64,000 nt of DNA from Ostrea edulis (GCF_947568905.1 NC_079169.1:12958001-13022000); one strand, 5' to 3'. Positions 2,508 to 60,802 are shown, counted from the stretch's first letter. Translations and numbers: made by a program. Notes: generated by a model not told the origin, from the letters alone.

Positions 2508-4551
2508 CTAATATTGGCATTTACAAGGTTTTCCCTGAAACAACAATAAAATTCTAATTAGTACTGAAATCACATTTAGATTGAATCTATTAAAACTAAT
2601 TGTTCATCAATGTAATTAATGAATTGAAATACAAACCAGTTTCATCTCACAGACGTAGTAGTTTCTCTGGGCACAGCTGTCCACGTGCCAGTGGTAGTGG
2701 TAATGCTTCCAGAAGGCTCCACAGTTCCAGTCGCCGGCTTTGTGGTACACGGGCTCGCTACCATACCAGTCAAACTTGTGACACCGCTTCTTGCTGAATC
2801 CCCAGATCCATCTGTGGGCGTTAGGGTACAGACAGTCATTCAGACCCATCCAAGCTCCAGGAGAGACTTTAAAGAGATAAGATTAAAATCATCACTATTT
2901 GTGAAACGACAATATACCATACATGATTATGCGCCCTGCTGTTTCATATCGACAGAATTTTTGATTTGTTTTATTGCTTTATTTTTGTTGGTTTTCTTGT
3001 TGTACGTCCCGTCGATAATTTTTCACTGATATTGAGACGTCACCAACTGTAGGTCAAGTACCACAGATTTAGACCTATTCTTAGCGCTCAGGGCCGTAGA
3101 AGTCAGGGTTCTTAATCGTGCCAACGCATGTCGCGATACGGGACATCCGATTTTAAGGTTATATCCGAAAGACCCAAGATTCTTACTCAGGTAGACAGAC
3201 ATTTTGCGAAATTATGTTATTTGATAATGAGGAATTCAACATCATTAATTCGATATGTACACCTGTAGTTCTTGTCTATAGAGTGGACATGTTTATTTAT
3301 CAAAATAACATTTTCAAATAATTTGTAATTCAAAAAGAGAAAATGACAATCTACTGGCCTAACTTTTCTGCCTTTGTAATGTTTCCTTCATTGTCTTAAA
3401 CTGAAGCAGACTGGCCTTCATCTATTTACATCTGATTTCTTACCCCCATACATGGCCAGGTGATGTCTGACGTAAGTGTTTTCGTGCGCCTCGTCAACAT
3501 TACACAAGAAACCGCCCATGGAAGCACATTTCATCTGAAATATATCACATTAATGCATTCCATCATGTGAACTCAACAACACGTATTAATGATATGTTGA
3601 ACTCGCGTACCGTTATTTCAACAGTAACTACTAATCACGTGACACTAAATAGGACATATGTACCTCTGCTTGCCACCATGTTAGTCTGTCTCGGCTGAAA
3701 TAATAACAGCTCCCGTGATACAAAGACCAGCCATAAGGACAGCTCCCGGCCGCCACCTTGGCAGCCATGTACCCAAACTTGCTGTATTGTGGGGCATTGT
3801 TGTAGCTGGCCTCGACGGCTGAAATAAGTGTTAGAGTTCACTACTGATGATATAAGAAATGTTACACTTCACTACAAATGATATAAGAAATGTTACACTT
3901 CACTAGAAATGATATAATATGTCATAATTCGATACTAATGGTATAAGAAATGTTACATGTACAGTTCACAAGAAATGGTATATAAATGTTACAATTCACA
4001 AGAAATGATATATAAATGTTACAATTCACTAGAAATGATATATAAATGTTACAATTCACTAGAAATGATATACCAACAACTAACTATACTAGTAAAGAAC
4101 GAAGCATACATCAGTTATATCAAGGGCTGTCTAGAATATTGCGCCGAGTTGCAAGGTTCAATCATAGATATAACGAAGATCTCTGTAGACGAGATTCACT
4201 AGGTACACTGTATTTATGTGAATATCAATCTCACTTGACAAAAGAAAACTTATGTTTGAAATATAAAGACAAACACGTTAAACTGAAATTACATTAAAAG
4301 GGGGAATGTCTAAAATAAAGAAACAAGAACGTTAAACTGAACTAACAATAAAAATATGGAATTTAATTTAAAGGAAAAACACTTTGAATTGAACAGACAG
4401 TAGAATAGGAAAGTTTTAATTAAAGAAATGGACAAAAATGTTTTATTTACAGATGACAAGTTGTTTATATTAATTTTGGCAGGGTGTTGAACTTCTACAG
4501 TTTACCTGCACAGACGAATACCAGAAGAGCGACCACAAAGACGGCTTGCAT
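2508..4551 (-). CDS. Secreted C-type lectin-domain (perlucin-like) protein, subfamily B, copy B1 (182 aa)
   Basis: Exons 4551-4506 (MQAVFVVALLVFVCA signal peptide), 3818-3664, 3534-3444, 2866-2637, 2534-2508 (GKPCKCQY*); all GT-AG, intron phases 1,0,1,0; CTLD cysteines and WMGL motif. Confidence 0.92.
3020..3200 (-). mobile_element. Degenerate partial SINE in intron 3 of B1
   Basis: GAGACGTCACC...TTTAGACCTA...TTTTAAGGT resembles the 1632-1960 SINE body. Confidence 0.55.
3838..4075. repeat. 30-31-bp minisatellite in intron 1 of B1
   Basis: Repeated AAATGTTACAATTCACTAGAAATGATATAT-like units; source of ORF 3957..4202. Confidence 0.8.
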
Positions 4552-4866
4552 GGCTTCAGTTTCTAGTGGACTGAGTATCACCATCGACTCCCTAATATAT
4601 ATACACTGTACGTTAGCACGCTGCATTAGTTTAACATGATTGTCTAAACATTTTAGATATTGTAACGACCATGAGCGTTATTGTAACCATGTGTAAACAT
4701 GTTTTTGCTGAATTGGCTCGATACAGGCGTTCCTGTATTGTAGCATATTCACAGCAGATTTATTTCACATGATTTGGGTGGGTTTTGTAGAAGTTTGATG
4801 TCATATCCCACACCATATAAAAGTCCCCGCGTTCCAAACCAAACACCATCCACTGATTCCTTCAGA
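4552..4866. promoter_or_regulatory. Bidirectional promoter region B1/A1
   Basis: 315 bp between divergent ATGs; TATATATA at 4596-4603 (for B1) and TATAAAA at 4816-4822 (for A1), each ~45 nt upstream of its ATG. Confidence 0.7.
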
Positions 4867-59200: not shown

Positions 59201-60802
59201 CTGATTGGTAGGCCGTTCTTTAAGCACTGCTTTTAACCATGGATTACTCTGTTTATCTGATTGAGGGCTCACGGCAGGTTTAACCGGTGGACAGGGGATA
59301 CTTACTCCTCCTAGACACCTACCTGATCCCATCGATCAAGTGTTTGCCCAACTCTCAATTTTGTATTCATTATAGGAGTTTTGAGATTGATAACTGTTCA
59401 TTGACTTTTCATGCTATTGTTTTTCCACACAATTAGGTGTCAGAATGGGTCAGTGCACCTTTACATGTAAGGTTGGATTTCTAAGCATGATGAATAACTC
59501 AATAGTGTTATATAGTTTAGAGAAAACATCCCCTCTTCGGGCCTTCAGATGTTTTCTGTAAACTATTCAACACCATCTCCTTATAATATACCCTAATCAG
59601 TTCGGAGAAGTACACAAATATATTCTACACAATCCATATCAAACCTACATATATTAAAAAGTTCAAATCAACCTGATAAATCAGGCAGTTTCCGATCAAA
59701 CTAATACATCTCACACAGTTCCGATAGATCCGGCCGAATTCGTAAATGATAAAATAAAAACGCAGTTTCAATGAAAGGTGAAGATAACGAACAGTGATCA
59801 ATCTCATAACTCACACTCCTTCAATCTAATGTGGTGAAGATAACAAACAGTGACTGATCAATCTCATACCTCCAATAAAGGTGAAGATAACGAACAGTGA
59901 TCAATCTCATAATTCCTATAGAGGTGAAGATAACGAACAGTGACCAATCTCATAACTCATATAAAGGTGAAGATAAAGAACAGTGATCAGTCTCATAACT
60001 CCTATAAATAATACAACATACAGAATTGGGCAAACACGGACCCATACACAATTCTCGCCTAAACAAAACTTAACAATTCTTGCATAAACAAAACTAAACA
60101 ATTCTACCCTAAACAGCAATTCCCCCCTAAACAAAACAAAACAATTCTCCCCTAAACGAAACTAAAGTCTCTCCTAAACAAATCTATATCAGAAACTGAC
60201 TTTCGTTGTTTTCTGTAGATGAGATGTACCGCTATGGGAGGATATCTCGCTTCTGTTGACCAGTCTCACGAGAACACGTACATCAGACACATGTTGAGCA
60301 CCTATGGATGTAAGGCAGTTCTGATAGATGAAATAATACATCTCTTCTCTGCAGTCTTCAGTTCCTTCATAATGATGTTTTATTATTTGCTTACTCTATG
60401 TTTACAGTCCGAAGAGGAGCATGGATGGCATTGAATGACGTTCTGAGACCAAACAAACACAGATGGTGCTGGGGATTCATCGTAAAGCCATGTCACAAAT
60501 TTGACTGGTACGGCCAGGAACCAGTTTACCACACAACTGGTGACTACAACTGTGGAATATTCTGGAGGTCCTATAAATACCACTGGCACGTGGACAGCTG
60601 TGGTCAGGGCAATCATTACGTCTGTGAAAGACCATTGGTAAGCGTCTTAGTACCATTCCATATTAAACTACAACAAAAATTGTTTCGTTAATATCTAATG
60701 TATATTATGTATCTAAAGGTACATTTGTACAACTTGAATAATGAATATTTATTTATTGAATGTTTTTTTCTTCAGGGAAAGCCATGCCTTTGTTCGTATT
60801 AG
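56294..60802 (+). CDS. Secreted C-type lectin-domain protein, subfamily A, copy A5 (183 aa)
   Basis: Exons 56294-56342, 57045-57199, 60219-60309, 60408-60637, 60776-60802 (GKPCLCSY*). Confidence 0.92.
56361..56771 (+). repeat. Interspersed repeat insertion in A5 intron 1 (same family as 18940-19155)
   Basis: Starts and ends with ATCACTGAAGAGAC...AAAATTGGTACC (period ~348 bp); absent at the equivalent position of A4 intron 1. Confidence 0.7.
57933..58453. mobile_element. 521-bp palindromic MITE with TTAA target duplication (Kolobok-like, AG...CT ends)
   Basis: ~30-bp TIRs (GGACACGATTTGAGCTGAAAATT), perfect 38-bp internal inverted repeat 58082-58119/58266-58303, TTAA at 57929-57932 and 58454-58457; empty TTAA site in the paralog at 35448-35451. 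Confidence 0.85.
59771..60050 (-). repeat. Tandemly reiterated 3' tails of the Naiad-type element (5 units)
   Basis: Five ~43-50-bp copies of (A)AGGTGAAGATAACGAACAGTGATCAATCTCATAACTC...; paralogous to 36581-36790 with one extra unit. Confidence 0.8.

Follow-up and report, generated by a model that had tools for sequence, protein, structure and literature searches.

Gene content and layout of the array

We have examined a stretch of 64,000 nucleotides (nt) from the Ostrea edulis genome (C6:12958001-13022000; referred to throughout as the window), in which genes for secreted proteins with a C-type lectin-like domain (CTLD) are arranged as a repeated divergent pair. The array occupies window positions 2508-60802, the outer bounds being the stop codons of the genes designated here B1 (2508) and A5 (60802). 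The whole window was searched by a six-frame motif scan, by tblastn with a hand-built A1 protein as query, and by splice-site modelling; these procedures identified exactly ten homologous CTLD genes between the two bounds, and the motif scan and tblastn found no additional gene fragments in the window. The genes are built of five exons (one of 46-52 nt for the signal peptide, CTLD exons of 152/155, 91 and 230 nt, and a terminal micro-exon of 27 nt), and the introns are GT-AG throughout, with the sole exception of a GC donor in B3. In the A genes of the window the micro-exon specifies GKPC(L/V)C(V/S)Y, and in the B genes GKPCKCQY; the mature A and B chains are ~165 residues long. Protein identity is 80-100% within subfamily A and 82-96% within subfamily B, as compared with ~60-64% between A and B. 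RefSeq, in which all copies are named perlucin-like, holds proteins identical to our models of B1, A2, B2 and B4, and one that is identical to the A1 model except for its upstream start. Coordinates are collected in Table 1.

The ten genes form five head-to-head pairs, B1(-)/A1(+), A2(-)/B2(+), B3(-)/A3(+), B4(-)/A4(+) and B5(-)/A5(+), whose start codons are separated by 315, 354, 403, 407 and 408 bp, respectively. An earlier reading of this stretch, made from the sequence alone, had proposed that every gene has a divergently transcribed partner of the other subfamily 315-408 bp away, that A/A pairs, B/B pairs and singletons are absent, and that the pair has been inverted and duplicated while its introns expanded up to 45-fold. 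Our models agree with this description: all ten genes lie in A/B pairs, pair 2 is inverted relative to pairs 1, 3, 4 and 5, and the length of A intron 2 varies from 85 to 3829 nt, a 45-fold range. The same reading counted ten genes in two subfamilies; the two subfamilies are indeed distinct and the ten genes are present, but because B3 is truncated and exon 4 of A3 is interrupted, only eight of them are clearly intact.

Table 1. Genes, spacers and inserted elements of the array, in window coordinates (aa, amino acids)
Feature	Position	Strand	Details
B1, intact B-type, 182 aa	2508..4551	-	exons 4551-4506, 3818-3664, 3534-3444, 2866-2637, 2534-2508; all GT-AG; identical to RefSeq P0073
Spacer of pair 1, 315 bp	4552..4866		TATATATA starts 50 nt upstream of B1 ATG; TATAAAAG 51 nt upstream of A1 ATG
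A1, intact A-type, 183 aa	4867..6280	+	exons 4867-4915, 5482-5636, 5722-5812, 5898-6127, 6254-6280; exact within RefSeq P0001
A2, intact A-type, 183 aa	11813..13501	-	exons 13501-13453, 13038-12884, 12469-12379, 12275-12046, 11839-11813; identical to RefSeq P0058
Spacer of pair 2, 354 bp	13502..13855		TATA 55-59 nt upstream of A2 ATG, 50 nt upstream of B2 ATG
B2, intact B-type, 181 aa	13856..15459	+	exons 13856-13901, 14013-14164, 14421-14511, 15104-15333, 15433-15459; identical to RefSeq P0068
Degraded reverse-transcriptase element replacing the B3 3' end	17456..18225	-	open reading frame pieces match the 359-aa reading frame at 15520-16596 (+)
B3, truncated B-type pseudogene	18226..20584	-	exons 20584-20533, 20432-20281, 20104-20014 (GC donor); exon 4 from 18358 to ~18226
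Spacer of pair 3, 403 bp	20585..20987		TATA 47 nt upstream of B3 ATG, 45-49 nt upstream of A3 ATG
A3, A-type, interrupted exon 4, function doubtful	20988..23667	+	exons 20988-21036, 22578-22732, 22995-23085; original exon 4 start 23174
124-bp repeat inserted in A3 exon 4, after its 16th base	23190..23313	+	>40 matches in window; best 97.6% identical
B4, intact B-type, 182 aa	29979..31732	-	exons 31732-31684, 31563-31412, 31303-31213, 30345-30116, 30005-29979; identical to RefSeq P0006
Spacer of pair 4, 407 bp	31733..32139		TATA 48 nt (B4) and 44 nt (A4) upstream of ATGs
A4, intact A-type, 183 aa	32140..37515	+	exons 32140-32188, 32900-33054, 36884-36974, 37073-37302, 37489-37515; intron 2 of 3829 nt
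B5, intact B-type, 182 aa	53172..55885	-	exons 55885-55837, 55682-55531, 55420-55330, 53533-53304, 53198-53172; mature part exact in RefSeq P0070
Spacer of pair 5, 408 bp	55886..56293		TATA 46-48 nt (B5) and 42-44 nt (A5) upstream of ATGs
A5, intact A-type, 183 aa	56294..60802	+	exons 56294-56342, 57045-57199, 60219-60309, 60408-60637, 60776-60802; intron 2 of 3019 nt

Pairing elsewhere in the genome and in other species

The remainder of the O. edulis genome was searched with one B query and one A query, both of which retrieved identical loci. A sixth pair, B(-)/A(+) with a gap of 406 bp, lies 40 kb past the window at C6:13.0615-13.0678 Mb, which brings the total on this chromosome to six. 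An older divergent pair of a longer form, with a gap of 371 bp, is present at ~66.09 Mb of C3 (loci L003/L004, C3:66.084-66.104 Mb). Its B-like member has an N-terminal extension of Cys-rich repeats and a Gly-rich linker (orthologues P0019 and P0020), and its A-like member, which is without the loop Cys that precedes the FDW motif, has a Lys/Thr-rich extension (orthologue P0021). We considered whether P0019-P0021, at 310-317 aa, might be fusions of A and B, and rejected this: they are single-domain long forms with N-terminal extensions. Neither the A-query nor the B-query search of the genome found an unpaired copy belonging to the A or B clade.

Pairing was also sought in other bivalves, and A and B were found head-to-head in four more oysters. 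The gaps of the short-form pairs are 382 and 343 bp in Saccostrea echinata, 334, 311 and 309 bp in S. cucullata, 331 and 317 bp in Magallana gigas, and ~303 and 327 bp in Crassostrea virginica. Together with the O. edulis copies, 15 of 15 short-form pairs from five oyster species in four genera are head-to-head A/B pairs, they occur in both genomic orientations, and every short-form gene examined has its partner at 303-408 bp; duplicate pairs are not, of course, independent observations. The long-form pair of S. echinata is head-to-head as well, with starts ~361 bp apart. The same WD40-repeat gene follows the pair array in M. gigas and C. virginica (L011 12567-21242; L012 13159-18516), and this gene is a possible anchor for synteny.

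These observations support the view that the A/B pair is an ancient unit of duplication and inversion, as judged from its arrangement in the genomes compared. The sequence-only reading had gone further and called the duplicating pair obligate, and this part of the proposal is weakened by the more distant members of the family. Three distant members, 44-53% identical to the others, are unpaired in O. edulis (L005 at C3:66.065 Mb, L006 at C3:65.617 Mb, and L007/L008 at C10:3.02-3.03 Mb); orthologues of two of these, P0116/P0219 and P0100, have N-terminal extensions and end in GKPCECQL or GKPCKCRY. In S. cucullata, two long-form B-like copies follow one another in direct tandem without an intervening A-like gene, an arrangement that could be an assembly issue. 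Finally, the four family genes of Pinctada imbricata include three that are directly tandem, and at the single divergent junction the CTLD exons are 6.7 kb apart. Because the Pinctada copies are mostly in direct tandem, the tight pair looks like a feature of the oyster family, Ostreidae, so far as these genomes represent it. The Pinctada GenBank model P0201, which joins CTLD exons to a ferritin gene 40 kb off (VSWD01000008.1:33.385-33.409 Mb; L014/L015), covers what are really four CTLD genes.

Core promoters and spacers

All ten genes of the window have a TATAWA box starting at 42-59 nt upstream of the ATG, so that the TATA box on each strand of every gap, as first read from the sequence, is borne out. 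The same placement was observed in 30 of 32 genes from the five oyster species, against a mean of 1.24 and a maximum of 5 in 500 shuffles, and at other offsets the motif was found in 0-3 of the 32. Each gene therefore has its own TATA core promoter. The two boxes of a pair are ~200-300 bp apart, and the two core promoters stand back-to-back.

Spacer length was 350 +/- 39 bp (mean for the 15 short-form pairs; range, 303-408 bp). The spacers of pairs 4, 5 and 6 are 91-95% identical overall, that of pair 4 being 91-92% identical to those of pairs 5 and 6, and no second copy of the pair 1 spacer was found anywhere in the window. The spacer of pair 2 shares a short orthologous block with the A(-)/B(+) spacer of S. 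echinata (z = 10.7), and that of pair 3 shares short orthologous blocks with the B(-)/A(+) spacer of the same species (z = 6.8).

Evolution of the two subfamilies

A maximum-likelihood tree resolved an A clade (support 95/91) and a B clade (89/97), with the unpaired relatives outside both. Each clade contains Crassostrea, Saccostrea and Ostrea sequences, and the A/B split therefore predates these genera. The ratio of nonsynonymous to synonymous divergence (dN/dS) was 0.00-0.16 in all comparisons, a range that points to strong purifying selection on A and B alike. A4 and A5, for example, are identical as proteins, with 0 nonsynonymous and 11 synonymous differences.

The A and B trees both separate pairs 2 and 3 from pairs 1, 4, 5 and 6, and are discordant in their finer topology. 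In addition, Saccostrea paralogs group by species, while the spacer blocks tie pair 2 specifically to the S. echinata pair Se2 and pair 3 to Se1. Since synonymous divergence (dS) is also discordant between partners, as detailed below, and since A intron 3 is alignable among the A paralogs, the simplest reading of the sequence comparisons is that gene conversion, centred on exons, has occurred within each subfamily and never between A and B, and that at least two pair lineages predate the split of Ostrea and Saccostrea.

Expression

Contigs from the RNA runs X1 and X2 contained the exact A and B splice joints of our models: the A exon 3-4 joint at 5812/5898 (GT..AG), the B exon 2-3 joint at 3534/3664, and removal of the 577-nt intron between B exons 3 and 4. 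A-type and B-type transcripts were both present in both runs; word depths were in the thousands for X1 and from tens to ~150 for X2. We could not retain these contigs as transcripts of pair 1, given that A exon 4 is ~97% identical among A1, A4, A5 and A6. At a loose end at position 6128, the contig sequence continues into GKPCICAY, the tail of A6; variant letters in the contigs point to different paralogs, and for several of the B variants the present assembly has no matching copy. Runs X7 and X8, which had been taken for transcriptomes by their share of matching words, were rejected as such, their contigs covering introns and spacer and thus representing DNA. Spliced A and B RNA in shared samples lends weak support to the co-expression of A and B that was originally proposed.

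Protein family and cysteine complement

The proteins belong to the Pfam family Lectin_C (PF00059). The full-length orthologues P0002 and P0004 reach 41.6 and 47.9 bits, respectively, against a gathering cut-off of 22.6, and the domain is precomputed for P0001 (A1) and P0006 (B4); single exons alone score below the cut-off. The closest relatives of solved structure are domains of the mannose-receptor family and of DC-SIGN. Snaclec chains (E ~1e-7 to 1e-6) and NKG2 are weak matches to A and B, and SPL chains, which form clam lectins discussed below, were not among the best 60 solved-structure matches. The canonical EPN/QPD and WND motifs for binding of sugar and calcium are not present, (Q/S/N)EP(V/I) and WH(V/M)D standing in their places, and any sugar binding may follow another mode.

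Six canonical cysteines (alignment columns 216, 227, 244, 320, 336 and 344) are invariant in the alignment (37 of 37 sequences); by analogy with other CTLDs, they would be paired as an N-terminal hairpin disulfide and two core disulfides. All short-form chains of the five species have, besides these six, a loop Cys that precedes HKFDW and a C-terminal CxC tail. The position of the loop-Cys partner distinguishes the subfamilies, being HRWC in short-form A (13 of 13) and LNDC in B (20 of 20). Short-form B chains have a further Cys in the sequence GGFLC (17 of 17), which gives them an odd total of 11 versus 10 in A (11 in O. edulis A4-A6). In A4, A5 and A6 the additional Cys lies two residues into exon 2 (VCEASY), near the likely signal-peptide cleavage site (32900-32910 and 57045-57055 in the window; L002 4842-4852 for A6), and if retained in the mature chain it would give these proteins 11 cysteines, like B. 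The unpaired relatives P0100 and P0116/P0219 end in a CxC tail as well, so that this tail characterizes the family at large and is not specific to pairs.

Comparison with known systems

In the collagen IV genes the subfamilies alternate, with one of each kind per pair. COL4A1/A2, A3/A4 and A5/A6 are arranged head-to-head with a short common promoter region, and the pair has been duplicated (PMC2120565, PMC1487180); COL4A5 and COL4A6 are nevertheless differentially expressed despite their shared promoter (PMC2120565). The oyster pairs resemble this system in having two paralog subfamilies, one member of each per head-to-head pair, and duplication of the pair as a unit. They differ from it in that the collagen chains are known to co-assemble, whereas the oyster pairs are known here from their genes, and in that the vertebrate promoters do not have two TATA boxes ~250 bp apart.

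With respect to protein type, the snaclecs (alpha and beta chains) and CD94/NKG2 are heterodimers of two paralogous chains with the CTLD fold. Their similarity to oyster A and B is only that which is generic to CTLDs, their origin is independent, and no evidence for loop swapping or an interchain disulfide was seen for the oyster proteins. SPL-1 of the clam Saxidomus purpuratus is a secreted CTLD heterodimer in which A and B chains are joined by interchain disulfides, and whose B chain also forms the homodimer SPL-2 (PMC12842671). Like the oyster proteins, SPL-1 and SPL-2 are secreted bivalve CTLD proteins with A and B chains. In contrast, the disulfides of SPL involve N-terminal cysteines; in the oyster proteins the additional cysteines lie in the domain and in the C-terminal CxC tail. 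The SPL chains are not close in sequence to oyster A and B.

Bivalves have hundreds of C-type lectin genes. Oyster A and B share with these expansions the Lectin_C domain, a signal peptide, single-domain structure and tandem expansion, and differ from them in the fixed divergent pair as the repeat unit, in the EPV/EPI and WHVD motifs, and in the terminal GKPCxCxY micro-exon. No description of a two-subfamily divergent pair as a repeat unit was found in a review of bivalve lectins (PMC12842671) or in an accession-based search of the literature. In architecture, then, the oyster pairs are like collagen IV, and in protein type they appear to be like the CTLD heterodimers without being their close sequence relatives.

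Origin and maintenance of the paired arrangement

We consider it probable, if well short of certain, that A and B constitute an anciently fixed, co-regulated divergent pair of paralogs for secreted CTLD proteins, which has been expanded as a block into an array. According to this proposal, block duplication and inversion of the A/B pair would have built the array, which on this O. edulis chromosome numbers six pairs, the window containing five. Every gene has its own TATA core promoter ~45-55 nt upstream of the start codon, and the two back-to-back promoters place both genes of a pair in one compact regulatory region, where they would most likely be activated in concert, in the same secretory cells. 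Within a subfamily, copies would exchange sequence by gene conversion, A and B never doing so, and the array would turn over by birth and death, with pair 3 now in decay. Three features go beyond what chance or mechanics would supply: in four genera all short-form cases retain the pair, spacers have kept their length and TATA positions while their sequence turned over completely, and no solo A or B gene is found in O. edulis. They suggest that A and B of a pair are switched on together, and we infer co-regulation from a common region and products that act together.

Several observations weigh against this proposal. Except in pairs 4, 5 and 6 and in the short orthologous blocks, spacer interiors are unalignable between pair lineages. 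No conserved cis-element was found in them, no 7- or 8-mer exceeding shuffled controls; AGGCGTT, which had seemed a recurrent motif, was rejected, being present in only 6 of 14 spacers. What is conserved is architecture and length and not a detectable shared element, and the shared bidirectional promoter first proposed thus stands as an arrangement of back-to-back core promoters, without common sequence between them. Also, the ATG of the RefSeq A1 model is upstream of the TATA box, and if that model is backed by RNA, a transcription start would lie elsewhere. The RNA evidence consists of assembled contigs from two runs, which are not assignable to one pair and give no levels. Lastly, dS is discordant between partners (for pairs 1 and 2, A 0.39 and B 1.07; for pairs 2 and 4, A 0.44 and B 1.36), and the members of a pair therefore do not have one strict common history.

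A similar reservation applies to the lack of repeats in the short gaps, which the earlier reading had also noted. Multi-copy repeats are indeed absent from the spacers, whereas they cover 20% of the bases in introns and 26% of those between pairs in the window. However, the spacers amount to 1.9 kb in ~53 kb of non-coding DNA (3.6%), and because they are so small a target, zero insertions or breakpoints in them would be expected fairly often without selection. The observation is statistically unremarkable in this window alone, and we rejected it, as underpowered, as proof of constraint. A intron 3 and B intron 4, moreover, are as constant in length as the spacer.

A physical association of A and B, for instance in a disulfide-linked hetero-oligomer, is a possibility toward which we incline a little less than halfway. 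In its strict form, which we put forward tentatively and with somewhat more doubt, A and B would be obligate 1:1 subunits of a disulfide-linked heterodimer or heteropolymer, held on one bidirectional promoter by selection for equal dosage. Such a relationship would be consistent with the conserved pairing across species, the co-occurrence of A and B transcripts, the joint decay of both genes of pair 3, and the retention in five species of subfamily-diagnostic cysteines (GGFLC with its odd total in B; HRWC in A versus LNDC in B) together with CxC tails on both chains; SPL-1 provides a bivalve precedent with interchain disulfides. Yet the tails are also carried by unpaired relatives, partner tails show no covariation, no A+B fusion protein was found among relatives, and dS is discordant between partners. 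Nor need the precedents imply an obligate heteromer: the SPL B chain is also a homodimer, and COL4A5/COL4A6 shows that a common promoter is compatible with differential expression. A more elaborate version is unlikely as a whole, in our estimation. It would posit an oyster alpha/beta lectin-domain system, independent of snaclecs and SPL-1, in which back-to-back TATA promoters supply equal doses of A and B, the odd Cys of B and the CxC tails join them covalently into a hetero-oligomer with a non-canonical surface devoid of the sugar site, and the pair is indivisible since a single chain is useless.

Alternatively, linkage may be purely mechanical, an ancestral inverted duplication having made the pair and later breakpoints having fallen in the larger inter-pair DNA, with A and B acting independently, for instance as homo-oligomers with different ligands. 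Spacers of 0.3-0.4 kb, as compared with 2-15 kb between pairs, fit this explanation, as do the complete turnover of spacer interiors without a shared motif, the equal constancy of short introns, and gene conversion that is independent within each subfamily; unequal crossing-over between same-subfamily copies would, furthermore, preserve the alternation automatically. On the other hand, 15 of 15 short-form pairs and two long-form pairs have been kept across genera in both orientations, with the short-form spacers held to 303-408 bp, solo A or B genes are absent from O. edulis, transcripts of the two subfamilies occur together, and pair 3 is damaged in both members and not in one. On balance, mechanical linkage by itself seems to us a rather unlikely account. 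An assembly artefact, by which collapsed or duplicated haplotypes would pass for repeated pairs, is suggested by little except the close similarity of pairs 4, 5 and 6, and is extremely improbable given that intron sizes, signal peptides and spacers vary from copy to copy, that RefSeq annotates the copies separately, that four other assemblies have the same layout, and that the stretch is present in DNA runs of three further studies.

Bivalve CTLDs are usually treated as independent single-chain receptors, and the co-regulated pair that we favor provides a testable case in which gene layout predicts co-regulation and, possibly, pairing of subunits, among abundant secreted proteins of commercially important oysters. 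A natural divergent promoter of ~350 bp with two TATA boxes would also be useful for studying or engineering paired expression in molluscs. Should the proteins not associate, the array would be a clean example of block duplication alone preserving a striking pattern.

Decay of pair 3 and mobile elements

Pair 3 is decaying in both members, each of which has been struck in exon 4 by transposons. Exon 4 of B3 breaks off after ...EPVYHKA near position 18226 and then runs into an internal retroelement reading frame; nothing is left of exon 5 or of the remainder of exon 4, and B3 has no RefSeq protein. The 359-aa reading frame at 15520-16596 (+), to which the element in B3 corresponds, matches RVT_1 with E = 2.2e-5 and 24.7 bits, below the Pfam cut-off of 29.6. 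Two copies of this reverse-transcriptase element, at 15520-16596 (+) and 17456-18141 (-) and thus inverted to each other, occupy the tail-to-tail interval between B2 and B3, the first starting ~60 bp past the B2 stop codon, and the arrangement looks like an inverted duplication that took along part of B3.

The defect in A3 was at one time modelled as a 4-nt insertion or deletion at the splice acceptor. This was rejected in favor of insertion of the 124-bp repeat in exon 4, with the original acceptor retained. A cryptic AG at 23313 would permit an in-frame A3 mRNA that lacks 4 codons (23314-23531, then 23641-23667). Close copies of the 124-bp repeat lie at 16695-16818, 24507-24630 and 48700-48823, and because copies are up to 97.6% identical the family appears to have been recently active; it accounts for part of the intron expansions. 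A separate stretch of ~90 bp in B1 intron 3 (~3008-3098) probably represents a highly abundant short repeat: contig depth there was 95-209 in each of the four runs, whether of DNA or of RNA, and loose ends flank it on either side.

Automatic annotation of the array

Two RefSeq models are chimeras of neighboring copies. P0061 joins exons 1-3 of A3 to exons 2-5 of A4, across B4 (window 20988-37515), and P0062 joins exons 2-3 of A5 to exons 2-5 of A6 (window 56942-60309 plus L002). Automatic annotation thus mis-joins adjacent copies in the array, and manual curation is needed. P0001 and P0065 begin at upstream ATGs that take in the TATA box region, and P0070 is without a signal peptide.

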